Source of the DNA: Histomonas meleagridis 2922-C6/04-290x
Taxonomy: Eukaryota; Protista; Parabasalia
Assembly: GCA_020184695.1 (NCBI GenBank)
Contig: JAANOX010000204.1
Coordinates: 1-47,141, forward strand
DNA length: 47,141 bases
Direction of reading: 5' to 3'
Part shown: positions 1-44,290 of the stretch, one piece after another
Layout: each line of letters begins with the position of its first letter
How positions within the stretch are numbered: the first letter of the stretch is position 1
Notes under the pieces: model-generated
Seen by the model: the letters and a program-made list of their open reading frames with translations, nothing else
Database searches by the model: none
Told to the model about the DNA's origin: nothing
Translations under genes and position numbers: made by a program

Positions 1-3000
1 GAGCACCCAGGCGGTGAGACCCAGGTGGCAGAGACCCAGGCAAGGTGGCAGACCCAGGCAGGCTGGAACCAGGTGGCGACACCCAGGCAAGTGGTGACAC
101 CCAGGCAGGAGACCCAGGCAGGTGGTGGAACCCAGGCGGTGGCACCAGTGGACCAGGCAGGCACCAGGCAGTGTGAGACCAGGCGGGGTGAGGACCAGGC
201 AGGAGCATCCAGGGCAAGGTGGAGGCCAGGCAGGCTCAGGGTGCAGTGGAGGCGAGGTGGCAGGAGTGGCCTGGCAGGTGAGACCCAGGTGGTGGAGACT
301 CAGGGCAGTGAGACTCAGGTGGTGGTGGACCCATGAGGGCAGGCAGGCACTGAAAGGCAGGCACCCAGGCAGGTGAGACCCAGGCGGCAGGATCCAGGCA
401 AGTGCGGGAGGAACCAGGCAAGGTGGTGACTCCAGGCAGGGAGGACCCAGGTGGGTAGAGACTCAGGCAGGTGAGGCTCAGGTGGGTGTGGAGGCCAGGT
501 GTGGTGGCAACCTGTGCGTGGCACCCAGGTGCGTGGCACCAGGCAGTGAGGCACCAGTGGAGGCCTCAGTGGAGGCACTGGCGCGTGGACAACCAGGCAG
601 AGATGATCCAGGCAGGAGGACCCAGGCAGTATGAGGCAGTGAGACCCAGGCAGTGGAGACCCAGAGCGTGAGGCCTCAGGTGTGGCACGAGGCGGTGAGA
701 CCCAGTGGCGGTGGAGGCCCAGGTGGTGAGGACTCAGGTGGTGCAGTGAGACCGCCAGGGTGGACACCAGGCAGGTGAGACCCAGGTGGTGAGACTCACA
801 GCATGACACTGAGGTACGGTGGAGGTGGCGGTGAGGCCAGGTGGGTGAGGCCAGGTGGCAGGGAGACTCAGGCAGGAGACCCAGGCAGGTGGAGACCCAG
901 GCAGGTGGAGACCACAGGTGGTGGAGACCAGGTGGTGGAGACCCAGCAGTGGTGGAGACTCAGGCAAGCAGGTGGTGGCACAGTGGGAGACTCAGGTGGT
1001 GGACACAGGGCAGTGGTGGACCCAGGGCAGGTGGAGCACTCCAGGTGCGTGAGACTGTGGCAGGCGGCACGCGCGGCCCAGGGCGTGGCACTCAGGTGCG
1101 TGGCGTCTGCGCGTGCGGCGACCCAGGGTGAGCCCAGTGCGCATAACGAGGCAGTGAGACCAGGCACAGGGAGTGGTCCAGGTGCAAAGTGGAGACTCAG
1201 GTGTGTGAGACCCAGGGTGGTGGCACTCAGGTGGTGGCACCCAGGTGTGGCACCCAGGGTGGAGAACCCAGTGGAGTGAACAAAGCAGTGGCACGAGGCA
1301 AGTGGTGGCAATCCAGTGATAATCCAGGCAGTGAGACCCAGGCAGGAGACCAGGTGGAGACGAGGTGGCAGGAGCCCAGTGCGTGGCACCCAGTGTGTGA
1401 GCACTGTGTGCGTGGCAGCCCAGTGTGTGGAGCCGTGTGCAGTGGCACCCGTGCGCAGGCCCAGTGCGTGGCGACCCAGGCAAGTGATAACCCAGATGTG
1501 ACACAGGTGTGTAGACTCAGGCAGGGAGACCCAGGTGTGGCACCCAGTGCGTGGCACCCAGCGCGTGGTTCCAGTGCGGGCACCCAGGTGCGTGGCATCC
1601 AGGCAGGTGAACAGGCAGGCAGACCAGGCGGTGGAGGAACCAGGCAGAACTGAGGTGGACACCCAGGCAGGAGACCCAGGTGTGGCACCAGGTGAGCCAG
1701 GTGGTGGTGGAGACCCAGGTGTGTGGCACTCCAGGGGCACAGGTGAGACCAGGCGGTGAGACCCAGGTGAGACCCAGCAGGTGAGACCCAGGGTGGCAGG
1801 AGCAACCAGGCAGGAGACTTAGGTGGTGGTGGTGGAGACCCAGGCAGGCAGAGGCCAGGTGCACCAGGCAGGTGTGGAGGCCAGGCGTGGCACCCAGGTG
1901 TGTGGCACCCAGGTGTGGCACCAGGTGGTGGCACCCAGGTGGTGACACCCAGTGGTGGCACCCAGGCAGGTGAGACCCAGGCAGTGGAGACCCAAGCAGG
2001 AGCACCCAGGCAGGTGGGAGGCCTGGCAGAGACCCAGGCAGGTGACACTCCAGGTGGTAGACCCAGGCAGTGGAGGCACCCAGGCAGGTGGAGACCCAGG
2101 CAGGTGAGGCCTGAGGCGGCAGTGGCCCAGGGCAGGAGACCCAGGGAGCGGTGGAGACCCAGGCAGCAGGAGGTCCAGGCAGGAGGTCCAGGCAGTGAGC
2201 AAAGGTGCGTGAGCACCCAGTGTGAGGTCAGGTGGTGTGGAGACTCAGTGTGTGGCACCCAGGTGGCACCCAGTGCGTGGCACTCAGGTGGTGAGGCACC
2301 AGTGGTGGTGAGACCCAGGCAGGTGGAGACCCAGGGCAGGTGAGAATCCAGGGCAGCAGTGAGCCCTAGTGGCAGGAGACCCAGGTGGAGCACGAGGCGT
2401 GGAGACCAGGTGGCACCCAGGCGAGGTGGCACCCAGTGGAGACTCAGGTGGTGGCACTGCGTGGCGCCAGGCATGTGAGACCAGGCGAGGTGGAAACGCA
2501 GCGATAACTAGGCAAGGGACACCAGGCAGGTGACACCAGGCAGAAATGTGGTGAGGCAGGCGTGGAGACCAGGCTGCGGCACCCAGTGCGTGGCACCCAT
2601 GCGGGTGGCAACCAGGCGCGGCGCCCAGTGCGGCGACCCAGGCGCGGCGACCCAGGCGCGTGGATGCCCAGGCCAGGTGGAGACCCAGGCGGCGGATAAC
2701 CATAGGCGTGACACCAGGCAGCAGGAGACCCAGGCAGGAGACCAGGTGGTGGGAGCACTCAGGTGGTGGCACCCAGGCAGTGTGAAGGTGTGGAGGCTCA
2801 GCAGGTGGCACCCAGTGCGTGGTGGCACCCAGAAGTGGCACCCAGTGTGGCACTCAGTGGCACCCAGCAGTGACACCAGGCAGTGATAACCCAAGCAAGG
2901 TGAGACCCAGGTGGCAGGAGACCAGGCAGGTGGAGACCAGTGTGTGAGCACCAGGCAGGCACCAGTGTGTGGCACCCAGTGGTGGCACCCAGGCGGGCAC

Positions 3001-6000
3001 CCAGGTGGTGTGAGACCCAGGTGTGGGAGAACTCAGGCAGGGAGACCCAGGCAGAGTCTGAGGCAGCAGGAGACGAGGTGGTGGAGACCCAGGTGGTGGA
3101 GGTCAGGTGGTGGCGACCAGGCGTGTGGAACCAGGTGTGTGAGGCCCAGGTGGCACTCAGGTGGCAGGGAGCACCCAGTGTGGAGAATCCAGGTGGCAGT
3201 GAGACCCAGGGTGATGACCAGGCAGTGGAGACTCCAGCGGTGGTGAGGACCAGGCAGGTGAGACCCAGGCAGTGGAGACCCAGGGTGAGCAACCAGGCAG
3301 TGGCACCAGGTGGTGGGACCCAGGTGCGTGGCACCCAGGCGAGGCACCAAGGCAATCCAGTGGCAGGAGGTAACAGGGAGTCCAAGGCAGGCACAGGTGG
3401 TGGAGAATCCAGGCAGGAGACCCAGGTGGTGGTGAGACCTTAGGTGAGACCAGTGGGTGCGGCACAGTGGTGCACCCAGGCGTGGCACCCAGTGGTGGCA
3501 ACCCAGGCGCAAGTGGCACCCAGGCGCGTGAGACCCAGGCATGAAATACACCTAGGCAGTGGTGGAGACCCAGGTGGTGGTGCGAGGCATTGAGGAGGCA
3601 GATGATGAGGGTATGTGAGACCCAGGCAGGTGGAGACTGAGGTGGTGGAGACCAGGTGTGGAGACGAGTTGGTGAGACCCAGTGGAGGAGACCCAGGAGG
3701 AAACGAGGCAGCGAGACACACAGAACAGGGCATACACCAGTGTGGGAGACTGAGGCAGGAGACCCAGTGGAGGACTCAGAGCACCAGGCAGTGAGGACCC
3801 AGGTCAGGCACCGCGGTGGGAGCACCCAGGCAAACCCACGAGCACCAGTGTGTGAACACCACAAACCAGCAGTGGTCAGTGCAACCAGGTGGTGGAGGCC
3901 CAGGTGTGCGCATGACCAGGTGGACACCCAGGCAGGTGGCACTCAGGCGAGTGGCACCAGGCAGATAACCAGGCAGAGACCCAGGGCAGCAAGAGACCTA
4001 CAAGAGACAGGCAGGGAGACTAGGGTGGTGAGCACTCAGTGGTGAGGCACCAGGTGGGTGGCACCCAGTGCGTGGCACCCAGTGCGTGGCACCCAGTGTG
4101 GTGAGACCCAGGCAGTGGAGACCCAGGCAGTGAGACCCAGGGCATGAACGAAGGCGCGATAACTGCGCGCATAACCATGCAGTGGCAATCTGCGCGCGCG
4201 ACGCTCAGTGCAGGACCGCGCGGCGTCTGCGCGCGCGGCGCCCAGCGCGCGGAGCCACTGCGCGGCGCCCAGCGCGTGGAACAGGCGCGCGATGAACCAG
4301 GCGCGCGGTGAATCAGCAGGTCAGGTGGTGGAGCACCCAGTTGGTGGAGCACCAGGCAGAGCACACAAGTCGCAGTGGATGAGGCCAGGCTGAGCCTGAG
4401 GCGAGACCCAGGCAGGTGAGGCCCAGTGGTGGAGACGCAGGTAGTGGAGACCAGGCATGTGAGGCCCAGGCAGTGAGGACCAGGCAGTGGAGCAATTGGT
4501 GGCAGGAGACCAGGTGGCAGCAGATGGACCCAGGCGGTGGAGACTCAGGGGTGTGAGGCTCCAGGCAGGTGGCACCCAGTGTGGCACCCAGGTGTGGCAC
4601 CAGTGGTGGGAGCCCAGGTGTGGAGACCAGGTGCAGGAGAACCCAGTGGCGGTGACACCAGGTGGTGGTGGAGACCAGGCAGGTGAGACAGAGGTGGTGG
4701 AGACTAGGTGGGTGGTGGAGACCCAGGCAGGTGAGGCCCAGGTGGACCAGGTGTGTGTGGAGGCCCAGGTGCGGTGGAGCACCAGGGTGGCAGGTGAGGC
4801 CCAGGTGGTGAGACCCAGGGTGGCAGGAGAACCCAGTGGCAGGTGAGACCCAGTGGTGACACCAGGTGCAGAACCAGCGTGGCACCCAGGGTGGCGCCCA
4901 GGTGGTGGTGGCACCCAGGTGTGTGGCACCCAGGCAGTGGCACCCAGGTGCGTGGCACCCATGGCAGTGCAGATCCAGGCAAGTGTATAACCAGGCAGTG
5001 AGCAATCCAGGTGGCAGGAGGCAGGTGAGGTGGTGGAGCACCCAGGCAGGAGGCAGGGTGCGGTGACACCAGCAGGTGGAGACCAGGCGGTGGCACCCAG
5101 TGTGGCACCCAGTGCGTGGCACCCAGTGCGTGGCACTCCAGTGTGGCGACCCAGGCAGTGGCACCCAGGCAGTGAGAACCCAGGCAAGGAGCACTCAGGT
5201 GGTGGTGAGACCCAGGCGGTGGCACCCAGTGCGTGGCACCCAGTGCGTGGCACCCAGGCAGGTGGAGACCAGTGTGTGGCACCCAGTGCGGCACCCAGGC
5301 GTGGCACCCAGTGCGTACAACCAGGCGCGGTGAAACCCAGGTGGTGGAGGCCGCAGGAGACGCAGGCAGTGAGGACCAGTGGTGTGGGAGACTCAGGTGG
5401 TGTGGAGGCCCAGGTGTGGTGGAGACCCAGGTGTGTGGCACCAGGTGGTGGCACTCAGTGGTGTGGATACCCAGGCAGTGTGGCGACCCAGGCAGTGAGA
5501 CCCAGTGTGAGCACCCAGGCAGGTGACTGAGGCGGCAGCAGGAGACCAGGTGGCAGTGCACTCCAGGCAGGAGCACGAGGTGGCAGGTGGAGGCGAGTGG
5601 CGGTGGCGCCCAGGTGTGGCACCCAGTGCGTGGCACCCAGGCGTGGCACCGCGCGTGAGCACCCAGGTGGGCAACCAGGCAGGTGAGACCCAGGTGGTGC
5701 AGGAGACCCAGGCAGACACCCAGGCGCGGTGAGACCCAGTGCAGTGGCACCAGGGCGCGGCACCAGGCGTGGCGCACCAGTGCGGCGTCTTGCGCGCGAG
5801 GCGCCCAGGCGACACCCAGGCGCGTGGCGACCAGCGCGCGCGGCGTCCAGCGCGCGCGGCGAACCAGGTGGCAGTGATGGACCCAGGTGGTGGTGGAGAC
5901 CCAGGCAGGTGAGCACCCAGGTGTGGCACCAGGGGCAGTGGTCAGGCCCAGGTGGCACCCAGGTGTGGCACCCAGGGTGGTGGAGACCCAGGCAGCAGGA

Positions 6001-9000
6001 GACCCAGGCAAGGGTGGAGCACCCAGGCGCGCGACACCCAGGCAGTGGAGACCCAGTGCGTGGAAAATGGCAGGTGGAGACTCAGGTGGTGACACGCAGG
6101 TGTGGCACCCAGGTGGTGCACCCAGCGTGGCACCCAGGCAGTGAGAACTGAGGCAGGCGTGGAGGGACCCAGGCAGCGTGATAACCCAGGTGAGACCCAG
6201 TGTGGACACCAGTGGTGTGGCACCCAGGTGCGTGGCACCCAGGCAGGTGGCACCCAGGCGTGGTGGCACCAGGCGTAGACCCAGTGTGGCACTCCAGTGC
6301 GTGGCACCTGTGCAGCGGGCACCACGCGTGGCACCAGTGCGGCAACCAGGCAAGTGCGAGCACCCAGGCAGCAGTGAGACCAGGCAGTGAGCACAGGTGG
6401 AGACTCAGGTGGCAGGAGCACTCAGGTGGTGACTACCCAGGTGGCAGGAGGCTCAGTGCAGGCCAAGTGCGGTGACCCAGGCAGGTGAGGCTCAGTGTGG
6501 TGGAACCCAGGCAGGAGACCCAGGTGCAGGTGAGACCCAGGCAGGAGACCAGGCGTGCGACACCCAGGCGTGGCACCCAGGCGTGGCACCGGTGGCACCA
6601 GGTGGCACTCCAGTGTGGCACCCAGTGCAGGTGGAGCCCCAGTGCGTGGCACCCAGTGGCACCAGGCAGTGGTGGAGACCCAGGCAGGTGGAGACCCAGA
6701 TGTAAGGCAGGAGACTGAGGCAGGAGAGAACCCAGGCAGGAGGCACTCAGGTAGGAGGCCCAGGTGGTGGAGGACTCAGGTGTGCACCCAGGTGTGGAGA
6801 CCCAGGTGGCGTGGTACTCCAGTGGTGAGGCGCAGTGTGTGAGACCCAGGTGGAGACCAGGCAGCAGGAGAACGCAGGTGGCAGGAGCACCAGGTGGTGT
6901 CCAGGTGGTGAGCAGGTGAGACCCAGGTGGTGCGTGGCACCCAGTGCACTCAGGCGGTGGTGGAGACCAGTGCACCAGTGCGTGGCACCCAGGAGCAGTG
7001 GTGGAACCAGGCGTGAGAACCAGGCAAGTGAGGACCAGGTGGCAGTGAGAAGGAGTGGTGAGACCAGGCAGTGAAACTCCAGGTGGTGGCACCCAGGCGC
7101 TGTGGCACCAGCGTGGCGCCCAGGCGTGGCACCCAGGTGCGGCACCCAGGTGAGCACTCCAGGCAGGAGACCTCAGGTGCGTGAAGAATCCAGCGGCAGT
7201 GAGACCCAGGCAGGCAGGAGAACAGGTGGAGGACCCAGGTGACACCAGGTGGTGGAGCACCCAGGCAGGAGACCCAGTGGTGGAGGCCCAGGCAGGTGAG
7301 GCGCAGTGGTGGGAGACCCAGGTGCGTGGCACCAGTGGCAGGCCCAGGGCAGGTGGCGAACCAGGAAGTGCGTGAGAACTCAGGCAGGTAGAGGACCAGG
7401 GCAGCAGGTGCAGAGACCCAGGCAGGTGGACACCAGGTGGCAGGGAGCACCAGTGTGTGGAGACCCAGGTGTGTGGCACCCAGGTGTGTGGCACCCAGTG
7501 TGTGGCACCCAGGCAGGTGAGACCCAGGCAGTGGCAACCAGGTGGTGGTGAGCACCCAGGCGCAGATAACGAGGCGTGGTGAGGCACCCAGGTGGCATGA
7601 GACTAAGGTGAGGACCAGGTGGTGGCACTCAGGTGGTGGTGAGGCCAGGCACCAGTGGTGGAAACAGGCAGTGGAGACCCAGGTGCAGTGGTGGCACTCA
7701 GTGGGTGGCACCCAGGTGGTGGCACCCAGGCAGGAGGCCCAGGCAGCAGTGGAGCAACCCAGGCGCGATAACCAGGCGGTGAGCACGCAGGCGCGGCGTG
7801 GAGACCAGGTGGAGACCTACGCACACCAGGCGGTGGCACCAAGCGGCACCCAGCACCCAGTGCGGAGACCCAGCGCGCGCGGCCCGCGCGCGCGGTATGA
7901 TCCAGCCGCGCATGACCCAGGTGGCAGACACCAGGTGGAGGTGGAGGTCTAGGGCAGGAGCACTCAGGTGGAGACCAGTGCGTGTGGCACCCAGGATGCT
8001 GGTGGAGACCAGGTGGTGTGGCACGAGGCACTCAGTGCGTGGCACCCAGCGGCGGCACCCAGGCAGTGAGACCCAGGCAGGAGCATCCAGGCAGTGGAGA
8101 CCCAGGCAGGGAGACCCAGTGGTGGAGACTTAGGTGTGTGACGACGCAGGTGAGACCAGGCAGGGAGAGACCCAGGTGGGTGGTGAGACTCAGGGTGACC
8201 AGTGTGGCACCCAGGTGGTGGTAGGACACGTCAGGTGGAGGACCCAGGCATGGACCATGGCAGGAGACCAGGCAAGAGACGAGGTGGTGTGGCACGCAGT
8301 GGTGAGACCCAGGTGGACCCAGGGTGGTGATAATCCAGTGTGTGGCACCCAGGTGTGGAGGAATCAAGGTGGAGACCAGGTGGGTGGCGACACCAGGCGT
8401 GGAACCCAGGTGGTGGTGGTGACCAGGCAAGGCAGTAACTCAGGCAGAGACCCAGGCACATGTGAGACCAGGCAGGTGGGAGACCCAGGTGGTGGTGGAG
8501 GCTCAGGTGGTGGCACTGCACCCAGGTGGTGGCACCCAGTGTGGCACCCAGGCAGGTGGCAGCAATCAGGGCGGTGCAGTGGAACGAGGCAGGGTGGCAA
8601 TCCATGAGTGATCCAGGCTGGTGGACACCAGCAGGAGACGAGGCAGTGGTCCAGGGTGTGTGGCACCCAGGTGTAGCACTAGTGTGGTGACACCAAGTGG
8701 TGAGCACTCAGGTGCGTGGCACGCAGTGCGTGAGCACCCAGTGGATGACCCAGGCAGTGGTGGGTGGCCCAGGCAAGTATAACCAGGTAGCGGTGACACC
8801 AGGTGAGCACCCAGGTGGTGAGACTCAGGTGGTGGTGGCACTCCAGGCAGTGAGACCAGGTGGTGGCACCCAGGTGCGTGAGGCCCAGGTGAGTCAGGCA
8901 AGGTGGAGGCCCAGGTGGTGGAGGCACCCAGGTGGTGGCGAACCCAGGCAGTGGAGAACCCAGGCAAGTGACAACCCAGGTGCAGTGGCATCCAGGTGGT

Positions 9001-12000
9001 GGTGGAGGCCCAGGTGTGAGGCCCAGTGTGAGTGGCCCAGGTGGGTGGAGACCCAGGCAGCGTGGCACCCAGTGTGTGCAGGCCCCAGTGCGTGGCACCA
9101 GGTGGCAGTGGCACCCAGGGGTGGAGACTCAGGCAGGAGGAACAGGCAGTGGCACCGAGCGTGGAACCCAGGCAAGCAGGAGAACCCAGGCGTGATGACC
9201 CAGGTGGGTGAGACCCAGGTGGTGGAGACCCAGTGCAGGCACGAGTGTGGAACAGGTGGCAGGAGACCCAGTGTGGTGGCACCCAGGTGCGAGTGGCACC
9301 CAGGCATAACCCAGGCAAAAGATGATCAGGTGGCAGTGGAGGCCCAGGCAGCAGGAGGCCCAGGTGGCAGTGGAGAACCAGGCAGGAGACCCAGGGCAGG
9401 TGGGAGACCAGGTGGTGTGGCACCCAGGTGGTGGAGGCTCCAGGTCAGGTGGAGGACTGAGGCAGCAGGGTGACCAGGCAGGAGTCCAGGTGCTGGAGGC
9501 CCAGGCAGAGGAGCACCAGGTGGCAGGAGACTGCAGTGGTGGAGACCCAGGTGGGTGACACCAGGTGGTGGAGGCCCAGTGCAGGCACCCAGTGGTGGTG
9601 GCACCCAGGCAGGCAGTGAGCACCAGGCGGGTGGCACCCAGGTGGCAGAGGCCCAGGCAGGTGGAGGCACCCAGGCGCAGTGAGATCCAGGCGGGTGACA
9701 CCAGGTGCGTGCAGACCCAGTGGGTGAGCACCCAGTGGGTGGTGTGGCACCCAGGGTGCAGGACCCAGGGTGCGGTGCAGGCCCAGGCGTGGCACCCAGT
9801 GTGGCACCCAGGCAGGAGGCCCAGGGGTGAGACCCAGGCAGCAGGGCAACTATCGGCAGAGGACCAGGCGGTGGCACCAGGCAGGTGGAGACAGGTGCAG
9901 GAGACCCAGGCGTGTGGCACTCCAGGGTGGTGGCACCCAGTGCGGTGGCACTCAGTGGCGTTCCAGGTGGCACCCAGTGGCGTGGCACCCAGTGGCACCC
10001 AGGTGCGTGGCACCCAGGTGAGTCCAGGGTGAAAAGAGGACCCAGGCAGTGGAGACTGGCAGTGAAACCCAGGTGGTGAGACAGGTGGTGGTGGACCAGG
10101 TGCGTGGAGCCCAGTGTGGCACCAGGTGCGTGGAGGCTCAGGCGTGAGACCCAGTGTGTGGCACCCAGGCAGGAGACCCAGGCAGAGCATGGTAACCCAG
10201 GCATGGCAGTGGAGGTGGAGCACCAGGTGAGGCCCAGGTGGTGAGGACCAGGTGGCACCCAGGCGTGGCACCAGGTGAGGCTCGGCAGTGTGGCACCCAG
10301 GCAGGAGACCAGTGGGCACCAGTGCAGTGGCAACCAGGCAGGTGATAACCAGGCAAGGCACCCAGGCAGGAGACCCAGGCAGTGTGAGACCCAGGTGGCA
10401 GGCGCACCCAGGTGTGCAGACCAGGCGTGGTGGAGACCCAGTGTGAGTACCAGTGTGGCACCCAGTGCGTGGCACCCAGGCAGTGAGACCCAGGCAGTGG
10501 ATAACAAAGACAGGCAGGAGACCCAGGCAGAGCACAGGTGGCAGGAGACCAGGGTGGTGGAGGCCCAGTGTGTGGCACTCCAGTGCGTGGAGGCCCAGGT
10601 GTGGCACCCAGGCGTGAGTCCCAGTGGTGGTGAGACCAGGTGGGCAGGTGGCACCCAGGCAGGTGATAACCCATATGAGACCCAGGCAGGTGAGACCAGG
10701 TGAGACCAAGGCAGACACCCAGGTGTGAGACTCAGTGGTGGCACCCAGTGGTGGCACCCAGGCGTGGCACCCAGGTGGTGTGGAGACCCAGGCAGGTGAG
10801 ACCCAGGCAAGGTGGTACCAGGCATGAGGAACCCAGTGGGGCAGGACACCAGGTGGTGGATAACCAGGCGGTGGAGACTCAGGCAGGAGACCCAGGTGCA
10901 GGTGGAGACTCAGGGCGTGAGACTAGGCACTCAGGTGAGACCCAGGTGCGTGGCGCCCAGGCGTGGTGACACCAGGTGGTGGTGGCACCCAGGTGCATGA
11001 CCCAGGCGGTGAACTGAGGCAGCAGACCAGGGCGTGAGGCTCAGGCAGTGGAGCACCCAGGCGGTGTGGTGAGACCCAGGTGTGTGGCACGCAGTGGGTG
11101 GTGGCACCCAGGCAGTGGTGGAGACCAGGTGGTGGTGGAGGCTCAGTGGGTGAGGACCAGGTGTGGTGTGGCACCAGTGAGACCCAGGCAGACCCAGGCA
11201 GGTGAGACCCAGGCAGAGCACCCAGGCAGTGAGGCTCCAGGTGGTGGTACTCAGGTGGCAGGACCAGTGGTGGTGAGGCCCAGGTGGTGGTGAGACCCAG
11301 GGCAGGAGGACCAGTGTGTGGCACAGTGTGAGGCCCAGGTGGTGGAGACCCCAGGCAGGCAGACACTGAGCAGGTGGAAACCAGGCACAAGTGATGACTC
11401 AGGTGGTGGAGACTGGCAGGCAGGAGACCAGGCGGTGGTCAGCCAGGTGGCAGGTGGAGGCCAGGTGTGTGGAGACCCAGGTGGGAGGATCAGGCAGGAG
11501 ACTCAGGTGGGTGGTGAGCACTCAGTGGCAGGAGACTCCAGGTGGTGGAGGCACGCAGGTGGTGGAGACCAGGTGGCACACTGAGGCGGTGATGAACCAG
11601 GCAGGTGGAGGACCAGGCGGTGTGAGACTCAGGCAGGTGAGGACTGAGGGTGCATGGAGACCCAGGCAGGTGGAGGCGCAGTGGTGAGGCTCAGGTGGTG
11701 CACCCAGGGCAGGAGTGCCCAGGTGGTGGTGACTCAGGCAGGTGGAGACCAGGTGGTGGAGTCACCCAGGTGGTGGTGGTGAGACCAGGCGCAAGTGAGA
11801 ACCAGGCAGGAGAGGTCCAGGGCAGGAGCACCCAGGTGCAGGAGGCCCAGGTGGTGGAGACCCAGGCAGGAGACCCAGGTGTGAGGCCCAGGTGCGGCAC
11901 CAGGCGCGCGTGAGCCCAGGTGTGGCACCCAGTGTGGCACCAGGTGGTGGCACCCAGGTGGTGAGACCCAGGCGTGACAACCCAGGCAGTGGCAACTGAG

Positions 12001-33000: not shown

Positions 33001-36000
33001 AGGGTGTGGCACTCAGGTGCGTGGCACTCAGTGTGGCACCCAGGTGCGTGGTGAGCACCCAGTGTAGGCTGGATGACCATGTGGTGGTGGCACCAGTGCA
33101 GTGCGTGGCACCCAGGCGGGCAGGTGGCAGCCCAGTGTGGAGAACCCAGTGTGTGGCACCAGGTGGTGGCACTCCAGGTGGCGGTGGCACTGTGGCATCT
33201 CAGGCAGCATGTGCAGTGGCAGTGTGGAGCCCAGGTGGTGGAGACCCAGGCAGTGGCACTCAGGTGGCCTGCAGTGAGGACCCAGGTGGTGGAGTACCCA
33301 GGTGTGGTGAGCACCCAGGCAGTGGCACCCAGGCAGTGTATAACCCAGGCGGGCGGGGAGACCCAGGTGAGTGGCAAGTCGAGGTGGCAGTGAGACCCAG
33401 GTGTGGCGACCCAGGTGTGGTGGCACTCAGGTGTGGTGGCACCAGGTGCGTGGAGACTCAGTGGTGGCACCCAGGGCGGTGGCACCAGGCGGTGGCGCAC
33501 ATCCAGGTCAGGTGTGAGACCCAGGCAGTGGTAGCCCAGTGCATAACCAGCGCAGTGGTGGCGACCCAGGTGGCATGGTGACCAGGCGCAGTGTGTGAGA
33601 CTCAGGTGGCAGGGTGGCACCCAGTGGTAGTGGCTACCAGGTGTGGCACCCAGGTGTGGTGCAGAGTAGGCGTGGTCAGCAGTGTGCGCCGGTGTGTCAG
33701 GCAGGTGGCACCCAGGTGCGTGGCACCAGTGGTGGCTGAACCAGGCAGGTGAGCACTCAGGTGGAAACCCGAGGTGACACTCAGGGTGGCAGGTGTGACT
33801 CAGGTGGCAGTGGTGATCAGGTGGTGGCACCCAGGTGGCACTCAGTGTGGACACAGGTGGTGTGACGATGTGCGTGGTGGCACGTGGTGGGACCCAGGTG
33901 GCACCCAGGCGGTGTGGCACCCAGGTGGTGGCTAACTCAGGCAGTGGTGGCACCAGGTGCGGCACCCAGGTGGTGGTGGCACCGAGGCGGTGGCACCCAG
34001 GTGTGGGCACGCAGTGTGCAGGCTAGTGCGTGGCACCCAGGTGTGGTACCCAGGCTGAGGTGGCGCTCGGCAGGTGAGACCTCAGGATGAGACGTGAGGC
34101 GTGGTGCAGGAGACTCAGTGGTGGTGGGCTCAGGTGTGAGACCCAGTGGTGGAGACGCAGGTGGTGGAGCACGCAGTGTGGCAGTAGTGCGGTGGCCCAG
34201 TGTGGTACTCCAGTGTGTGGCACCAGGTGGTGGTGGCACTGCAGGTGGCACCCAGGCGGTGGCACCCAGGCAGTGAGACCCAGGCGTGAGACCTTAGGCG
34301 GTGGTGACCAGAGTGGTGAGCACCCAGGTGGAGGCTCAGGCAGTAGACTCAGTGGTAGGCACTCAGGTGGACCAGGTGGCACCAGTGTGGCACCCAGTGC
34401 GTGGCACCCAGGTGGCACGTGGTGGCAGCCCAGTGCAGTGGCACCCAGCGTGTGGCAACCCAGTGCGCAGGCAGATCCAGGCGAGGAGACCAGGGTGCAG
34501 GTACCCAGGTGGAGTACCAGGCGTGGAGACCAGGCGGTGGCACTCAGGCGGTGGCACCCAGGTGCGGCACTCAGCACTCAGGTGGTGGCACCAGTGGCAC
34601 TCAGTGCGTGGCAGAGCCCCAGCGTGCGGCACCCGCAGGGTGGCACCCCAGGCGTGAGACGCCCAGCAGTGGTATGATCCAGCGCACCAGGGCAGACTGC
34701 GGTGGTGGCACCCAGGGTGTGGCATCAGTGTAGCACCCAGTGCGACAGGTGGCGACACCAGGTGCAGCCCAGTGCGTGGCACTCAGGCGCGTGGCCCAGT
34801 GGTGGCAACCCAGGTGCTGGCGCCCAGCGTGTGGCACCCAGGTGGTGGAGCACCCAGTGCAGTAGACCCAGTGCAGTGGCACCCAGGGCGTGGTAAGTGC
34901 GTGGCGCCAGGTGTGGTACTCAGGCGTGGCACCAGTGCGTGTGTGCACCCAGCGGCACGAGACTCCAGGTGGTGCAGCGCAGGTGGTACCCAGGCAGCGC
35001 ACCAGGTGGCATGGCACCCAGTGCAGGTGGCGACGCAGTGGTGGCAGGTGGTGGTGGCAGGTGGTGTGGCTCCAGGTGTGGTGGCACGCAGGTGTGGCAC
35101 ACGCAGGTGTGGCACCCGGTGTGTGGCACCCAGTGTGGTGGCACCCAGGCGAGTGGCACCCAGGCAGGTGCACCCAGGCGCATGGGACCCAGGTGCAGAG
35201 CAGCCCAGGGCAGGTGACCCAGGTGAGGACCAGGGTGGCAGTGCACGGCAGGTGGCACCAGGTGCAGGTGGACGCAGTGTGGTGACTCAGGGTGTGGCAC
35301 CCAGTGCGTGGCACCCAGGCGGTGGCATCCAGTGATGGCACCCAGGTGGGCAACCATGTGTGGCAGGTGACACTCAGGCAGTGTAAGAACTCCAGTGGCA
35401 GGGAGCCCAGGGAGTGGTGGAGACCTAGGCAGGAGACCCAGGCGTGAGTGGCACCGGCACTCAGGTGCGGCACCCAGGTGCGTGGCACCCAGGTGTGGCA
35501 CCCAGGTGCGTGGCACCCAGGCGTGTGGCACCCAGGCGTGTGTGGCGAACCTGCAGTGGTGATAATCAGGCTGATAATCAGTGAGACTGTGGCACTCAGT
35601 GTGGCAGGCACCCATGTGGTGGCACCCAGGCAGGTGGCACTCAGGTGGTGGTGGCACCCAGGCGTGGCAAGTGGCAGCCAGTGTGGAGACCTCAGGCAGG
35701 TGACACCCAGGTGCAGTGGTCAGGCACTCAGGTGTGTGGCGACCCAGCGTGTGGTGGCTCCAGGTGTGGCAGACCAGGTGTGTGGCAGGGAGCACTGCAG
35801 GGTGGTGGAGACTCCAGGTGTGGGGCACCCAGGTGCGCGACCCAGTGTGCACGCAGGTGTGAGGCACCCAGGTGGCGTGGCACCCAGGCGTGGTGAGTGT
35901 CTCAGGCGTGGCGAACCCAGGTGCGCACGTGTGGTGGCACCCAGTGGCAGGAGACCAGTGGCGAGCAGGGCAAAGAGATCCAGGCGTCGAGTGCGGCACC

Positions 36001-39000
36001 AGGTGCGTGGCAGCCCCAGGCAGGGCAGGCTCAGTGCGTGGCACCCAGGCGTGTGGCAACGGCGGCGTGGCTGCGCGAACCATGGTGGTGGTGGAGACCC
36101 AGGTGTGGAGACCCAGTGTGCGGTGGAGGCCCAGTGTGGCACCAGGTGTGGCACTCAGTGCGCGGTGGCACCCCAGGTGGCACCCAGGTGGACAGTGGCA
36201 CCCAGCAGTGCGTGGAGCAAGTGGCGTGCCCAGGTGGCGAAAACCAGGCGGTGACTGATCCAGGCAGGCGTCTCCAGGCAGAGCACCCAGTGGTGGTGAG
36301 ACTCAGTGTGTGGAGACCAGTGTGTGGCACTCAGGTGTGTGGCACGTGTGTGGCACCAGTGTGTGGTACCCCAGGTGTGGCACCTCAGGCGTGTGGCGTG
36401 TGGCCGGTGGTGAGCACCCAGGTGCAGTGTGGCACCCAGGTGGCAGCAGTGAGGCTAGGCAGTGTGGACGCAGGCGTGAGACCCAGGTGTGTGGAGGCTC
36501 AGGTGGTGCGCACTCAGTGGTGTAGGCCGCAGGTGTGGTGCAGGACTCAGTGGTGTGGCACCCAGGCAGTGGCACTCAGGTGTGTGGCACCCAGTGCAGT
36601 GGCACCCAGGTGTGTGGCACCTGCAGGTGGCGACCCAGGCTAAAGGCAGTGAGACCCAGGTGGTGAGGACCCAGGTGGCAGTGGGTGGCCCAGGTGTGCG
36701 TGGGACCCAGGTGGTGGAGACTCCAGGTGTGGTGGAGACCAGGTGGTGGTGGCACTCAGGTGGTGGAGACCCAGGTGTGGTGAGACCCAGGTGGTGGCAC
36801 CAGGTGTGAGACCTAGTGCAGTGAGACCCAGGTGGTGGCAGCACCAGGGCAGACAGTGAGACCAGGCAGTGATGTGACCCAGGTGGAGACCCAGGTGAGC
36901 ACCCAGGTCGCGTGGAGCACGCAGGTGGTGGCACTCAGTGTGTGGTGGCACCAGGTGGTGGTGGTGACCCAGGCAGGTGGCAGGCTCAGTGTGCGGCACC
37001 AGGTGCAGTGATGACCCAGGTGCAGTGTGAGACCCAGTGGCAGAGATCCCGAGGCAGGCAGGTAGGCACTGCAGTGTGTGGCACCAGGTGTGGCACTCAG
37101 GTGGAGGCTGCAGGCAGTGTGGAGACCCAGTGCAGTGGCACCCAGTGCGGTGGCACTCAGGTGGTGGCACCCAGTGTGTGGCGCCCAGGTCAGGTGTGGC
37201 ACCAGTGTGGTAGCAGACCCAGGTGGTGAGTGCAGCCCAGGTGATGACCCAGTGTGAGCACCAGGTGTGGCGGTGGCAGCACCAGGTGGTGGAGGCGTGG
37301 TGGCACCCAGTGCTGGTGGCACCAGGTGGTGGCGCCTCAGGTGTGCGGCACCCAGGCTGGCAGCACTCCAGTGCGTGGCACCCAGGCGTGCGGCACCAGG
37401 CAGTGGTGGCACCCAGCGTGAGTGCCCAGGCAGTGTGACAGCCCAGTGATGGGAGACCAGGTGCGAGCACCAGTGTGGTGAGACCCAGTGGGCGTGCATG
37501 CACCAGGGGCGTGGCATGCCCAGGTGCGCAGGTGGCACCCAGGTGGTGGCACCGTGGTGGCACCGCAGTGGCAGGTGGTAGTACATCCAGGTGGCAGCCA
37601 GTGGCAACTCCAGGCAGAGACCCAGGCAGAGCAGGTGAGCACTCCAGTGTGCAGTGAGCACCGCAGGGCGGTCGGTGGCACCCAGTGTCAGTGGAGACGC
37701 AGCTGGTGGACCTAGTGGCGTGTGTGGCACCAGGTGTGAGGACTCAGGTGTGGGTGAGGCCCAGGTGGTGGAGACTCAGGTGGCACGCAGTGCGTGGTGG
37801 CACTCCAGGCAGTGGCACCTGAGGCAAGGTAGACCCAGGTGGTGCATGGAGACCAGGTGTGTGACCCAGTGCAGGAGACGCAGGTGCAGCAGACCCAGGT
37901 GGTGGCACTCCAGGTGCGGCGCGCAGTGCGGGCGCAGCAGTGGTGGCAATCAGGTGCACCCAGGTGTGAGACGGTGCGCGTGGCACCCAGGCGTGCGTGG
38001 AGCCCAGGCAGGCAGAGCAATCCAGGTGTGTGGAGTCCAGGTGTGCAGTGAGGCTCAGGCTAGGTGAGACCCAGGTGTGTGGAGCACCAGGTGTGGACAC
38101 CCAGGTGGTGGAGCAGCCCAGTGTGTGGCACTCAGGTGGTGGTGGTGATCGCAGCGTGGCGCAGTGGCAGCAGTGTGAGACTCGAGGCAGGTGATGAACC
38201 CATGCAGTGCGACAGTACGCACAGGTAGAGGACAGGTGCAGTAGCACAGTGGCAGGAGACCCAGGCGTGTGAGCACTCTGTGTGCAGTGAGCACCCAGGC
38301 AGGTGGCAGCCCAGTGTGCAGAGCACCCAGGTGCGTGGCACCCAGGCAGGTGGCACGCAGAGGCAGGTGTGGCACCCAGTGCGTGGCGCCATGCGGCAGA
38401 CTCCAGGCATGGCACCAGGTGCGAGCCTGGCAGCGAGCAGGTGGAGCACTCAGGTGCAGGTGGAGCACCCAGGTGGCACGAGCGTGGCAGGCAGTGGTGG
38501 CAACCACAGGTGGTGGTGGTGCACTCAGGTGCGAGGTCTGGGCAGAGTCAGGCGTGGGTGTGCAGCGCAGTGCACGAGTCTGTGCGTGGTAACCGGCGGT
38601 AGACTCCCAGTGTGGCACTCCACGGTAAGTGGCGAGACCCAGGTGCAAGGGAGCCAGGTGGCACAGGTGTGGCACCCAGTGTGCAGGAGATCCCAGGTGG
38701 GTGAGGACTCAGGTGGTGGAGCACCCAGGTGCGTGGCAGGCCCAGGTGTGGCACCCAGGCAGGTGGCACCCAGGTGGGTGGCACCCAGCAGTGGTGGCGT
38801 CCCAGGCGTGTGGCACGCAGTGCAGTGGCACCCAGTGGTGGCAACCCAGCAAGTGCATAAGGCAGCATGCATACCCAGGTGGCAACGCAGGTGTGTCAGG
38901 CTGTGGCACTGAGGCGAGGCACCCAGGTGTGCAGCGCTGCAGTGTGGTGGAGCCTGCAGGTGCTAGTGTGCACCAGTGTGTGGCACGCAGGCGTGTGAAT

Positions 39001-41997
39001 CCAGTGTGGTGGCACCCAGTGTGTGCTGGCCCAGGTGGCAGGTGGCACCTTGTGCGTGTGGCACCCAGTGCAGTGCGACCCAGCGCAGTGCAGCACCCGA
39101 GGCGGCAGGAGACCTGAGGCGGTGGTGGCAGATCCTGCGTGGAGACCGCAGGCGTGGTGGCACCCAGGTGGTGGAGACGTGTGTGGCACCCAGGCGTGGC
39201 ACGAGCGTGTGTGGCGTCCAGGTGCAGTGGCACCAGGTGCACGCAGTGACGCAGGCAGCCCAGTGTGAACTGGCAGCAGGTGAGACCAGGTGGCGAGCAC
39301 CCAGTGCAGTGAGGCAACCAGGTGCAGGCACCCAGGTGTGCGTGCAACCCAGTGTGCAGGCACCAGGTGCGCGTGGCGCTCAGTGCGTGGCACCTGGTGC
39401 GTGGCACCCAGTGGTGGCACCCAGTGGCACGTGTGCATGTGGCAGCCCAGTGTGCAAGTGTGGTGACTGAGGCAGTGGCACCCAGTGTGTGGGCACAGTG
39501 CGGGCACCCAGTGCGTGGCACTCAGTGGGAGACCCAGGTGCGTGGCACCCAGTGTGTGGTGGCACCCAGTGGTGGCACTCCAGTGCGTGGCACCCAGGTG
39601 GTGGCACCCAGTGGATGTGGTGGCACCCAGCGTGTGGCACCAGGCGCGCGTGGCACGTGCAGGTGGCACCTATGGCACCCAGTGAGTGGCACCCAGTGCG
39701 TGGCACTCAGGTGTGGTGGCAACCCAGGTGGGTGGCACCCAGTGTGGCACTCAGTGCAGTGGCACCCAGTGTGGGCGCAGGTGGCACACCAGGTGGTGTG
39801 TGGCACCCAGTGTGGAGACCCAGGTGTGTGGCACCCAGTGTGGCAACCCAGGTGTGTGGCACCCAGTGGTGGCACCCAGTGGTGGCAACCCAGTGCATGG
39901 CACCCAGGTGGCACTCCAGTGTGTGCACTCAGTGTGGCACCCAGGTGTGTGGTGGCACCCAGGTGCAGGGCACCCAGTGTGTGGCAACTAGGTGCAGGGG
40001 GACCAGTGCGTGAGACCCAGGTGTGTGGCACCCAGGTGCAGTGTGGCACTCAGGTGTGTGGCACCCAGGTGTGGCACCAGTGTGGTGGCAGACTGCAGGT
40101 GTGGTAACCCAGGTGGTGGCACCTGGTGCAGCAACTCAGTGGTGCACCCAGTGCGTGGCGACCCAGGTGTGGCACCCCAGTGCAGTGGCACCCAGGCGTG
40201 GCACCCAGTGTGTGGCAACTCCAGTGTGAGACCCAGGCGTGGAGACTCAGTGGCACCCCAGTGTGTGGCACCCAGGTGTGTGTGGCACCCCAGGGTGCAC
40301 TGTGTGGTGACTCAGTGCGTGGCACCCAGGTGTGTGGCACCCAGTGTGTGTGGCACCCAGTGTGTGGCACCCAGTGTGTGGCACCCAGGTGCGGTGGCAA
40401 CCCAGTGCGGTGGCACCCAGTGCGGTGTGGCACCCAGTGCAAGTGTGGCACCCAGTGCGTGGCACCCAGTGTGTGTGCGCCAGTGTGTGTGTCCCAGGTG
40501 GCGACTCCAGGTGGTGGCACCCAGTGTGGAACCCTGTGTGTGTGGCACCCAGGTGTGGCACCCAGGTGTGGCACCCAGTGCAGTGGCACCCAGTGGCACC
40601 CAGGTGGACTCAGTGTGTGGCACCCAGTGTGTGGCACCCAGGCAGTGGCACCCAGGTGTGTGGCACCAGGTGTGTGGCACCCAGTGTGTGGCTAGGTGTG
40701 GTGGTGGCACCCGTGTGTGTGTGGCACCTGGCGTGTGTGGCACCCAGGTGTGCAGTGTGGCACCCAGTGTGTGGCACCCAGGTGTGGCATCCCAGTGGTG
40801 GCGACAACGTGTGGTGTGTGGCACTCAGTGCAGGTGGCACCCGCAAGTGCGGTGGCAACCTGCAGTGTGGTGGCACTCAGTGTGTGTGGCGACTGTGGTG
40901 GGAGCCTGTGTGGCAGCCCAGTGTGTGGTACCCAGTGCGTGTGTGGCACCCAGTGGTGGTGGCAGCCCAGTGCGCCAGCTGTGTGGCACCTCCAGTGTGT
41001 GGCACCCAGGTGTAGTGGCACCCAGTGTGTGGCACCCAGGTGTGCGTGCGAGTGACTAGTGTGGTGGAGACCCAGGCGGTGGCACCCAGGTGTGGCACTC
41101 AGTGTGTGGCACCCAGTGTGACTCAGGTGTGGCACCCAGTGTGTGGCACCCAGGTGTGGCGCCCAGTGCGTGTGGCACGGTGGTGGTGAGCCCAGGTGTG
41201 TGTGAGCACCCAGGCATGTGATCAGGCAGTGCAGACCAGGTGCGTGCGCAGCGCAGTGTGGCACCCAGGTGGTGGCACCCAGGTGTGGCACTCAGTGTGC
41301 GTGGCGCCCAGTGCGTGGCACCCAGTGTGTGTGGCACCAGGTGTGGCGCCCAGTGCGTGGTGGCAACCCAGTGGCGACCCAGTGCAGGTGGAGCCCAGGC
41401 GCGCATAACCCAGTGCGGCGGCAGTGCGCAGGCCCAGCAGTGTGTGGACGACCCAGTGTGGTGTACGGCAATCAGTGTGGTGGCACCCAGTGTGTGGCAC
41501 CCAGTGTGTGGCACCTTGCGTGTGTGTGGCACCCTGTGTGTGGTGTCCCAGTGGTGGCACCCAGTGTGTGGCACCCAGTGTGTGGCACCCATGTGTGTGG
41601 CACCCAGTGTAGTGATAGTGTGGCACCCAGTGTGTGGCACGTCTGTGTGTGGCACCCAGTGTGTGGTGCTTGTGTGTGGCACTCAGGTGTGTGGCACCCA
41701 GGTGGTGTGGCACCTAGGTGTGTGGCACCCCAGTGTGTGGTCACCCAGGTGTGGCACCTTGGTGTGGTGGCACCCAGTGCGTGTGGCGCTCAGTGCGTGT
41801 GGCACTCAGGTGGCAATGTGTGTGGCACCAGTGTGGTGGCACCCTAGTGTGTGCACCCAGGTGTGGCACTCAGTGCAGTGTGGCACTCAGTGTGTGTGGC
41901 ACCCAGTGTGTGGCACCCAGTGCAGTGTGTGCACTCAGTGTGTGGCACCCAGTGTGTGTGGCACTCCAGTGTGTGGCACCCAGGTGTGTGGCACCCA
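1..41997 (+). repeat. Strand-uniform degenerate mosaic of ~13-18 nt units built from a small vocabulary (GAGACCCAGG, GGCACCCAG, GGCACTCAGG, GGAGGCCCAGG, GGCAGG, GGTGG, GCGTGG, GTGTG); probably a degenerate or miscalled form of the adjacent 15-bp satellite
   Basis: The CCAG anchor starts at 7, 21, 36, 54, 69, 83, 101 and 114 (spacings 14,15,18,15,14,18,13; mean 15.3). Words keep the same orientation throughout, TT/AA/TA dinucleotides are scarce, and the sequence grades continuously into the 15-mer array near 42,000. That it is real genomic sequence is not established. Confidence 0.85.
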
Positions 41998-43698
41998 GTG
42001 TGTGTGTGTGGTACTTGTGTGTGTGGTACTTGTGTGTGTGTGGCTTGTGTGTGTGTGGTACTTGTGTGTGTGGTACTTGTGTGTGTGTGGTGCTTGTGTG
42101 TGTGTGGTACTGTGTGTGTGGTACTTGTGTGTGTGGTACCGTGTGTGTGTGGCACCTATGTGTGTGGCACCCATGTGGCACTCCCAGTGTGTGGTACCTG
42201 TGTGTGTGGTACTACGTGTGTGTGTGTGGTACTCGTGTGTGTGGTACTCGTGTGTGTGGTACTTGTGTGTGTGGTACTTGTGTGTGTGGTACTTGTGTGT
42301 GTGGTACTCGTGTGTGTGGTACTTGTGTGTGTGGTACTTGTGTGTGTGGTACTTGTGTGTGTGGTACTTGTGTGTGTGGTACTTGTGTGTGTGGTACTTG
42401 TGTGTGTGGTACTTGTGTGTGTGGTACTTGTGTGTGTGGTACTTGTGTGTGTGGTACTGTACGTGTGTGGTGTGTGTGTGTGTGGTACTTGTGTGTGTGG
42501 TACTTGTGTGTGTGGTACTTGTGTGTGTGGTACTTGTGTGTGTGGTACTTGTGTGTGTGGTACTTGTGTGTGTGGTACTTGTGTGTGTGGTACTTGTGTG
42601 TGTGGTACTTGTGTGTGTGGTACTTGTGTGTGTGGTACTTGTGTGTGTGGTACTTGTGTGTGTGGTACTTGTGTGTGTGGTACTTGTGTGTGTGGTACTT
42701 GTGTGTGTGGTACTTGTGTGTGTGGTACTTGTGTGTGTGGTACTTGTGTGTGTGGTACTTGTGTGTGTGGTACTTGTGTGTGTGGTACTGTGTGTGTGTG
42801 GTACTTGTGTGTGTGGTACTTGTGTGTGTGGTACTTGTGTGTGTGGTACTTGTGTGTGTGGTACTTGTGTGTGTGGTACTTGTGTGTGTGGTACTTGTGT
42901 GTGTGGTACTTGTGTGTGTGGTACTTGTGTGTGTGGTACTTGTGTGTGTGGTACTTGTGTGTGTGGTACTTGTGTGTGTGGTACTTGTGTGTGTGGTACT
43001 TGTGTGTGTGGTACTTGTGTGTGTGGTACTTGTGTGTGTGGTACTTGTGTGTGTGGTACTTGTGTGTGTGGTACTTGTGTGTGTGGTACTTGTGTGTGTG
43101 GTACTTGTGTGTGTGGTACTTGTGTGTGTGGTACTTGTGTGTGTGTGGTACTTGTGTGTGTGGTACTTGTGTGTGTGGTACTTGTGTGTGTGGTACTTGT
43201 GTGTGTGTGGTACTTGTGTGTGTGGTACTTGTGTGTGTGTGGTACTTGTGTGTGTGGTACTTGTGTGTGTGTGGTACTTGTGTGTGTGGTACTTGTGTGT
43301 GTGGTACTTGTGTGTGTGGTACTTGTGTGTGTGGTACTTGTGTGTGTGGTACTTGTGTGTGTGTGGTACTTGTGTGTGTGTGGTACTTGTGTGTGTGGTA
43401 CTTGTGTGTGTGGTACTTGTGTGTGTGGTACTTGTGTGTGTGTGGTACTTGTGTGTGTGGTACTTGTGTGTGGTACTTGTGTGTGTGGTACTTGTGTGTG
43501 TGGTACTTGTGTGTGTGGTACTTGTGTGTGTGGTACTTGTGTGTGTGGTACTTGTGTGTGTGTGGTACTTGTGTGTGTGGTACTTGTGTGTGTGGTACTT
43601 GTGTGTGTGTGGTACTTGTGTGTGTGGTACTTGTGTGTGTGTGGTACTTGTGTGTGTGGTACTTGTGTGTGTGGTACTTGTGTGTGTGGTACTTGTGT
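41998..43698 (+). repeat. Tandem minisatellite, 15-bp unit GTGTGTGTGGTACTT (about 110 units by length/15), with occasional 13- and 17-bp units differing by one GT
   Basis: The 60-nt lines at 42481-42780 are identical and contain four units each. Translation gives 5-aa repeats (VWYLC / VVLVC / GTCVC). Variant units lie at 42040-42310 and 42451-42477. Confidence 0.97.
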
Positions 43699-44026
43699 GG
43701 GGGGGGAGTGTGGGTGTTACATGTGGTGGTAGGAACATGTGTCTGTGTGTTACTTGTGTGGGGGGGAGTGTGGGTGTTACATGTGGTGGTAGGAACATGT
43801 GTCTGTGTGTTACTTGTGTGGGGGAGTGTGGGTGTTACATGTGGTGGTAGGAACATGTGTCTGTGTGTTACTTGTGTGGGGGGGGAGTGTGGGTGTTACA
43901 TGTGGTGGTAGGAACATGTGTCTGTGTGTTACTTGTGTGGGGGAGTGTGGGTGTTACATGTGGTGGTAGGAACATGTGTCTGTGTGTTACTTGTGTGGGG
44001 GGGGGGAGTGTGGGTGTTACATGTGG
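43695..44026 (+). repeat. ~58-61 bp minisatellite, cluster 1 (5 full copies plus 1 partial): GTGT-(G)5-10-AGTGTGGGTGTTACATGTGGTGGTAGGAACATGTGTCTGTGTGTTACTT
   Basis: Copies read directly and differ only in G-run length (8,7,5,8,5,10). Confidence 0.95.
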
Positions 44027-44040
44027 ATATGGTGGTGGGT

Positions 44041-44205: not shown

Positions 44206-44290
44206 GTGTGGGGGGGGGAGTGTGGGTGTTACATGTGATGATAGGAACATGTGTCTGTGTGTTACTTGTGTGGGGGGGGGGAGTGTGGGT
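44206..44290 (+). repeat. Isolated variant copy of the ~60-bp unit (GTGATGATAGG instead of GTGGTGGTAGG) plus a partial copy
   Basis: Matches the cluster 1 unit with two G>A changes; G-runs of 9 and 10. Confidence 0.9.

Follow-up and report, generated by a model that had tools for sequence, protein, structure and literature searches.

Layout of the window

The window, by which we mean the whole stretch of 47,141 nt that was analysed, encodes no gene and matches no Rfam family. A long GC-rich mosaic occupies most of it and passes through a short mixed zone into a clean 15-bp satellite array, which is followed by related, more complex satellites and by an AT-rich flank of unique sequence:

1..41990, + strand: mosaic of about 2,860 garbled 15-bp satellite units, 66% GC and T-poor, which we read as a very probable basecalling artefact
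41991..42300, + strand: mixed transition zone, GGTACTT units among the intermediates GGTACTC, GGTACC and GGCACC (read directly and from word counts)
42301..43699, + strand: clean (GGTACTTGTGTGTGT)n array, about 11% of whose units are a 17-mer with one extra GT
43679..45615, + strand: complex related TG-rich satellites (TRF, sequence, exact repeats up to 184 bp)
43,679-44,026 and 45,214-45,530, + strand: units of about 60 bp whose poly-G varies (TRF)
44,267-44,566, + strand: units of 35-87 bp (TRF)
44,598-45,234, + strand: 19-bp unit, reported as period 38/57 (TRF)
45700..47141, no strand: AT-rich unique flank, 28% GC (composition), used as positive control in the read analysis

The first-pass annotation had let the mosaic extend over 1-43698. 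This end lies too far right, since the mosaic stops at about 41,990 and 42,001-43,699 is already clean 15-mer (TRF: period 15, 111 copies, 93% matches). Of the 89 units between 42,201 and 43,690, 75 share one sequence and 10 are 17-mers; a single local glitch lies at about 42,458-42,482. All complex satellites of 43679..45615 have a GGTACTTGTG / GTTACTTGTG core in common. The roughly 100 ORFs of at least 150 aa in the mosaic are purely compositional and spurious, and in the flank (45700..47141) we found no ORF of that length, no Rfam match and only small repeats. The purely compositional ORF list and the empty Rfam search agree with the earlier statement that no enzyme for repeat writing is encoded here. 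A literature search with core words of the 15-mer returned unrelated primer matches only.

Repeat structure and composition of the mosaic

The mosaic had been described as the 15-bp satellite rewritten, with a period of about 15 nt that matches the clean unit, roughly 2,800 units and an orientation that never flips. All three statements are borne out. Autocorrelation by base identity has maxima at lags of 13-17 and at their doubles in all 6-kb segments of 1-42,000, and the median spacing of the [CT]CAG anchor is 15-18 nt in 14 of 14 3-kb bins. Between 12 and 30 kb the median spacing is 16-18 nt, and the units underlying this part may be slightly longer than elsewhere. The true array under the mosaic may therefore include 17-mer variants. 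Wraparound alignment of the mosaic to GGTACTTGTGTGTGT counts 2,863 units of 14.4-14.9 nt each, with 52.6% matches, 35% substitutions and 12% indels relative to the template. As to orientation, CCAG occurs 1,782 times and its reverse complement 42 times, CACCCAG occurs 486 times and its reverse complement never, and only one of 27,414 14-mers has a reverse complement that is also present.

The words of the mosaic change along the window. GGTACTT is found 96 times in 42-44 kb and nowhere else, the commonest words of 40-42 kb are GGCACCC and CAGTGTG, and GAGACCC and CAGGCAGG become more frequent further left. With growing distance from the clean array, GGTACTT thus gives way to GGCACCC and this in turn to GAGACCC, and the graded anchor series noticed at first sight is recovered in the word counts. 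Words of the mosaic type include GAGACCCAGG and GGCACCCAG, words of the true-satellite type GTGGTACTTGTG; set beside the true 15-mer, mosaic forms read GGCACCCAGTGTGTG and GAGACCCAGGCAGGT.

Composition sets the mosaic apart from its surroundings. Its GC content is 65-69% versus 28% in the unique flank, so the GC-ward shift does run opposite to the AT-rich flank, as had been pointed out. T makes up 13.6% of the mosaic versus 46.3% of the clean array, and TT, though present in every true unit, occurs only 35 times in 42 kb. Template positions other than T are called T in 0-1% of units, versus 6-9% in an unbiased-decay control that was aligned to the template in the same way as the mosaic. G1, G2, A4, C5, G10, G12 and G14 of the template are retained in 66-98% of units. 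Over all alignment columns of the mosaic, transitions account for 15.4%, transversions for 20%, deletions for 7% and insertions for 5%. Hypermutation of the deaminase type (RIP, APOBEC-like or ADAR-like) was considered and rejected, since it is expected to produce one transition class in a defined context and no indels.

The duplication history expected of a satellite is missing from the mosaic. Exact repeats within 1-41,990 reach at most 41 bp and every 50-mer is unique there, compared with maxima of 340 bp in the clean array and 184 bp in the complex satellites. Of 1,581 anchor-delimited units, 1,158 are distinct. Identical adjacent units make up 0.8% in the mosaic versus 70% in the clean array, and the edit distance between units is 0.307 at lag 1 versus 0.338 at lag 1,000. 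Similarity between neighbours is therefore essentially flat with distance, in line with the earlier impression that each unit was redrawn independently, and the self-repeat check supports the claim that long exact duplications are lacking. We looked for higher-order repeats in the mosaic and found none. A block structure of the miscalls at the scale of chunks (about 200 nt) was also considered and discarded: correlation from unit to unit is gone within about two units. Compared with a genuine homogenised satellite, the region 42.0-45.6 kb fits well, since neighbouring units are nearly identical, exact repeats are long and the unit families are related, whereas the mosaic lacks the higher-order repeats, the neighbour similarity and exact repeats above 41 bp.

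These statistics bear on the reading of the mosaic as real DNA, that is, as a GC-rich minisatellite that arose from the 15-mer long ago and has since decayed or been hypermutated, with each unit diverging independently. The sequence does stand in a public assembly, and flat similarity is possible in principle for an array so old that homogenisation has ceased. However, the GC-ward shift opposes the AT-rich composition of the genome, T is not gained at non-T positions as unbiased decay would have it, and indels relate to substitutions as about 1:3. Moreover, a pristine array adjoins the mosaic through a graded zone of only about 300 bp, and transversions exceed transitions, so that there is no single deaminase signature. 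Together with the read evidence given below, this makes real DNA a very improbable explanation.

Mosaic words in independent sequencing runs

The read evidence consists of Logan contigs, not raw reads; they are direction-less and show presence better than absence, and the filter on Logan records may drop some. The runs X1-X4 contain 0.67-0.85 of the 31-mers sampled from the unique flank. For words sampled from the mosaic at 30,000-39,999, in contrast, no listed run contains at least 5%. In run X3, for example, less than 5% of the sampled mosaic 31-mers are present versus 73% of those of the flank.

Run contigs were placed on the mosaic at 36,000-41,990 only, and the positive control in the flank is the separate 31-mer sampling. 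Of the 30 bins of 200 nt in this region, 18 are covered by none of the four runs. Matches of X1, X2 and X4 are limited to three small places, at least two of which resemble true satellite; the loose ends in these three runs read TGTGGTACTTGT. X3 alone has contigs of 37-60 nt that match common mosaic words, as seen in the pieces and loose ends shown, and the identity of those that carry the commonest mosaic words reaches 99-100%. X2, which comes from the same sample as X3, yields four 33-nt pieces only, all at one site and 90-95% alike. GC bias may reduce short-read coverage at 66% GC, though hardly to zero.

Thus, the mosaic is not reproducible in the contigs of independent runs, as a genuine satellite array should be. 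The first-pass annotation had proposed two tests. Mosaic words are absent from runs that contain the adjacent flank, which speaks against a biological reading, and base-for-base agreement among independent data is lacking, so that the artefact reading stands. The short contigs of X3, with their high identity to the commonest mosaic words, are what the reads offer in favour of real DNA; against it are the low share of mosaic 31-mers in the same run, set beside that of the flank, and the few pieces at a single site in X2.

The same data weigh on the second option raised at first sight, namely that a cellular or mobile-element polymerase copies one short template with high and biased error. The independence of the changes from unit to unit and the constant orientation would agree with it, and only these. 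However, the window holds no gene for such an enzyme, its ORFs are compositional and it matches no RNA family, the product is not reproducible in reads, and basecalling noise explains the same facts more simply. We therefore regard a repeat-writing polymerase as next to negligible, and this part of the earlier proposal is not supported.

Probable misreading of a satellite and possible base modification

The reading favoured from the outset, that one 15-mer array was systematically misread, agrees with both the read tests and the internal statistics. It is highly probable that 1 to about 42,000 is an artefact of sequencing and assembly, in which a uniform 15-bp satellite was garbled by a basecaller of the nanopore type and left uncorrected. 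The internal statistics in support of systematic misreading are the flat neighbour similarity, the loss of T in one direction and the high frequency of indels. We infer a nanopore platform from the type of error and from the short-contig profile of X3. The underlying DNA is most likely a homogeneous continuation of (GGTACTTGTGTGTGT)n by about 2,860 further units, which would bring the array to about 44 kb.

In the mechanism we propose, the basecaller would render the monotonous signal of the satellite as a different, GC-rich pseudo-repeat. This pseudo-repeat would retain the unit length and the skeleton of G, A and C, while nearly every T would be replaced. TT would become CC, G would often become A and many indels would be introduced, all drawn anew for each unit. 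Polishing would be unable to correct the wrong calls, since these have no 31-mers in common with accurate reads. What stayed in the contig would therefore be the garbled read itself, or else a consensus drawn from a few reads that disagree. Similar current profiles of the true and the false repeat, drift in signal scaling within a low-complexity read, or base modification may be the proximate cause. A difference of about 47% from the template is extreme for miscalling, and the noisy mixture of words likewise counts against it.

Comparable errors are known. Errors of nanopore repeat calling lie directly next to the true repeat, have a similar period and show swaps such as CCCTAA to CCCTGG (Tan et al., 2022, Genome Biol 23:180, PMC9414165). 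They occur in non-telomeric repeats too, also with altered unit length, and the false repeats are absent from accurate reads (PMC9414165). The mosaic resembles these cases in that it is contiguous with the true array via the mixed zone at 41,990-42,300, keeps the period and phase of the true repeat, and has A to G as the main change on the complementary strand, as in CCCTAA to CCCTGG. Moreover, the false repeat is missing where the flank is present, with contigs as the data and the platforms inferred. Unlike in the published cases, the true unit is a 15-mer and not a 6-mer. Where those cases show one clean false repeat, the mosaic mixes different words, is noisy, has about 12% indels and drifts across tens of kb. 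It also spans 42 kb and was kept in the assembly. Miscalled satellites have entered ONT assemblies, for instance AAGAC read as AAAC; what gave them away was that Illumina or HiFi data of the same strain contain the true satellite and lack the false one (bioRxiv 10.64898/2026.07.13.738322). The same logic of absence from reads is applied here to the mosaic; that study, however, concerns 4-5-bp satellites with one consistent miscall, and our case a 15-bp unit with heterogeneous miscalls.

A variant of this explanation accepts the misreading and gives it a biological cause. In the deep part of the array a dense modification, for instance a T of the hydroxymethyl- or glucosyl-uracil type, or 6mA at the A of the opposite strand, would shift the nanopore signal and derail a canonical basecaller. 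If so, the switch from clean to mosaic would be an epigenetic boundary inside a satellite array of about 44 kb. The miscalls are indeed concentrated at template T, with next to no gain of T at other positions. About 1.7 kb of the 15-bp repeat, next to the mosaic, is read without such errors, which means that its sequence by itself need not make basecalling fail; this clean part may, however, just mark where short-read polishing worked. Accurate-read data contain canonical satellite words only, which is what a modified base that sequencing by synthesis reports as T would produce. On the other hand, the published repeat-calling errors need no modification (PMC9414165), and the non-T positions G8 and G2 are miscalled too, though effects of neighbouring bases could account for this. 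On balance we consider modification of the array improbable as the cause, if somewhat less so than real DNA. Whether it triggers the miscalling is the sole possibly interesting residue of the mosaic.

Misreading without any such cause thus remains our preferred explanation, and the mosaic is most likely a quality flag and not new biology. About 42 kb of the record are probably fictitious and could mislead analyses of repeats, GC content, CpG and gene prediction. The case further suggests that nanopore repeat miscalling is not confined to short telomere-like units, and that it can make a 15-bp satellite look like a complex GC-rich sequence that drifts over a long distance. Useful signs in a simple screen for such regions would be a period without exact repeats, similarity between units that does not fall with distance, and loss of a base in one direction.

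What is left as biology is ordinary: beside related 19-bp and roughly 60-bp satellites lies a large TG-rich satellite with a 15-bp unit. In telomeric arrays, the G-rich strand points with its 3' end to the end of the chromosome. Here, the 5' to 3' direction of the G/T-rich strand leads away from the array and into the unique flank, which would be the reverse of a telomere's orientation were the left edge of the window a chromosome end.

Layout of the window and a shared 15-nt period

The window divides into the following features, given on the forward strand:

1 to ~41,990: mosaic, 65-69% GC, with a skew of G over C
41,990-42,300: mixed zone with the intermediates GGTACTC, GGTACC and GGCACC
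42,001-43,699: clean array of the 15-mer GGTACTTGTGTGTGT (TRF: 111 copies, 93% matches)
43,679-45,615: complex TG-rich satellites related to the 15-mer (units of 19, 35-87 and ~60 bp)
43,679-44,026 and 45,214-45,530: two blocks of the ~60-bp unit, in which a poly-G run varies from 5 to ~11 G
44,267-44,566: 35-87-bp units, between these two blocks
44,598-45,234: 19-bp array, between the same two blocks
45,700-47,141: unique AT-rich DNA, 28% GC
45,709-45,751: inverted repeat of 21 nt with almost adjacent arms, at the satellite/flank border
46,312-46,447: imperfect tandem duplication (unit 66-70 nt, 79% identity) in the AT-rich flank

The first-pass annotation had extended the mosaic feature over 1-43,698; the mosaic is present but stops near 42.0 kb. 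Its proposal that the mosaic is the 15-mer rewritten agrees with our statistics. In each 6-kb slice of the mosaic, base-identity autocorrelation has maxima at lags 13-17 and at twice these lags; the median distance between [CT]CAG anchors is 15-18 nt in 14 out of 14 3-kb bins. Moreover, when the mosaic is aligned by wraparound to the clean 15-mer, it resolves into 2,863 units, each 14.4-14.9 nt long, where roughly 2,800 had been predicted. As had also been claimed, orientation is single (CCAG 1,782 versus CTGG 42; CACCCAG 486 versus 0 for its complement), and word counts show that the series of anchor words forms a genuine gradient along the window: GGTACTT is found in 42-44 kb only, GGCACCC with CAGTGTG predominates at 40-42 kb, and GAGACCC with CAGGCAGG predominates farther from the clean array.

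Within the clean array 10 of 89 units (~11%) are 17-mers, one GT longer than the 15-mer, and there is a local glitch at ~42,458-42,482. At 12-30 kb of the mosaic the median anchor spacing is longer (16-18 nt), which may reflect 17-mer-rich stretches in the hidden true array. The complex satellites form a nested TG-rich family with the common core GGTACTTGTG / GTTACTTGTG; the varying poly-G length of the ~60-bp unit may be due to homopolymer miscalling. Finally, the strand rich in G and T points 5' to 3' out of the array (1-45,615) towards the unique flank; were the window's left end that of a chromosome, a canonical telomere would have the reverse orientation. Thus, the array is probably internal or subterminal rather than telomeric.

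Duplication history and spectrum of changes

The mosaic indeed lacks long exact duplications: no 50-mer occurs twice in its 42 kb, and the longest exact repeat measures 41 bp, compared to longest repeats of 340 bp in the clean array and 184 bp in the complex satellites. The 1,581 anchor-delimited mosaic units comprise 1,158 different sequences, of which 1,019 are seen once. Adjacent units are identical in 0.8% of cases, versus 70% in the clean array, and their normalised edit distance is 0.307, versus 0.338 at lag 1,000. Exact repeats and unit edit distances over these 1,581 units thus reveal no duplication history. Growth by slippage or unequal exchange cannot yield this unit pattern.

The changes have one direction. 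Template positions G1, G2, A4, C5, G10, G12 and G14 are retained in 66-98% of mosaic units, and T positions are replaced. T content falls from 46.3% in the clean array to 13.6%, and TT, present once per true unit, occurs 35 times in the 42-kb mosaic. T at non-T template positions is found in 0-1% of mosaic units, versus 6-9% in a simulation of unbiased decay aligned in the same way. The shift runs GC-ward, as noted in the first reading, in an AT-rich genome. Per alignment column we count 52.6% matches, 15.4% transitions, 20% transversions, 7% deletions and 5% insertions; this error spectrum is machine-like, and such a mixture rules out a deaminase-type process. Local excursions, in which the miscalling enters another regime, are almost entirely transition images of the unit. 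An example is a GCGC-rich island at 4,229-4,300, where GCGCGCGGCGCCCA is the exact all-transition image of GTGTGTGGTACTTG (all T->C, A->G, final G->A). The missing duplication history, the one-directional change and the machine-like spectrum together make the mosaic unlike evolved DNA.

Read evidence

Four DNA runs that contain flank words (X1-X4) come from one study with two samples and two runs per sample; they were surveyed not as raw reads but as Logan contigs, for which a filter may drop records. For the unique flank, 0.67-0.85 of the sampled 31-mers are present in each run. For the mosaic at 30,000-39,999, no run contained even 1/20 of 1,034 sampled words. Of the distinct mosaic 30-mers, 99.7% occur once within the window.

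When contigs were placed on the mosaic at 36,000-41,990, 18 of 30 bins had zero depth in all four runs. Contigs of X1, X2 and X4 match at three small places only, at least two of which (36,320-36,352 and 41,644-41,678) resemble the true satellite; loose ends at the former read TGTGGTACTTGT. Among the four runs, X3 alone has contigs of 37-60 nt with mosaic words. The X3 pieces and loose ends shown are common mosaic words (GTGGCACCCAGTGTG is one example); of the 46 placed X3 records, 25 fit two places. X2, from the same sample, contributes only four 33-nt pieces at one single site (90-95% alike). This contrast within one sample indicates that the mosaic words are specific to the run, not to the sample. 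In X3 the mosaic is reproducible as words only, never as sequence. Thus, both read-based comparisons suggested in the first-pass annotation point to an artefact: the mosaic is absent from runs that contain the flank, and sequence agreement is not seen.

Probable miscalling and its alternatives

Internal statistics and read evidence support the reading favoured from the start, systematic misreading of one long 15-mer array, and we consider misreading by a nanopore-type basecaller very likely. On this reading the mosaic is no genuine feature of the genome, and the true DNA at this place is an unremarkable 15-bp satellite of great length, next to the related ones.

Nanopore basecallers frequently miscall telomeric repeats (TTAGGG->TTAAAA, CCCTAA->CCCTGG or CTTCTT); these miscalls adjoin the correct repeat, are strand-specific, span basecallers, organisms, non-telomeric repeats and altered unit lengths, and have been ascribed to similar current profiles (Tan et al., PMC9414165). 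Miscalled satellites also enter ONT assemblies, where they were spotted because Illumina reads lacked them and because of strand skew (2026 preprint, 10.64898/2026.07.13.738322). On the complementary strand, the mosaic's main change is A->G, by analogy of the type of CCCTAA->CCCTGG. The mosaic differs from known miscalls in its 15-nt unit, its extent, and in being a noisy drifting mixture rather than one clean false repeat. It adjoins the true repeat, shares its period and is missing from the orthogonal data; by these three features it would belong to nanopore repeat miscalling, on a platform that we infer. It offers a clear example of long miscalled arrays in assemblies and a basis for screening for them.

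A long read, maybe of the minus strand and running leftwards, would enter the array from the unique flank. The first ~1.7 kb of repeat would be correct, either from the basecaller itself or through polishing; farther into the array, the basecaller's reading of the monotonous signal would slip to a neighbouring solution and then drift further. Accurate reads would no longer map to the mosaic, so that polishing would leave it unchanged. Because it is mainly T, or A on the opposite strand, that is miscalled, the basecaller could be derailed by a biological trigger, namely dense modification of bases in the array, although we regard this as unlikely.

Mechanical calling on both strands of 1-43,900 gave 109 ORFs of at least 150 aa, the longest (830 aa) spanning the clean array; the scarcity of stop codons in the repeat accounts for them. 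A real GC-rich array is very improbable, and the repeat-writing polymerase that had been offered as the alternative is more improbable still; both are poorly supported. The window encodes nothing: these ORFs are compositional, and Rfam gave no match. Gene prediction on this record could take such ORFs for genes and produce false models.
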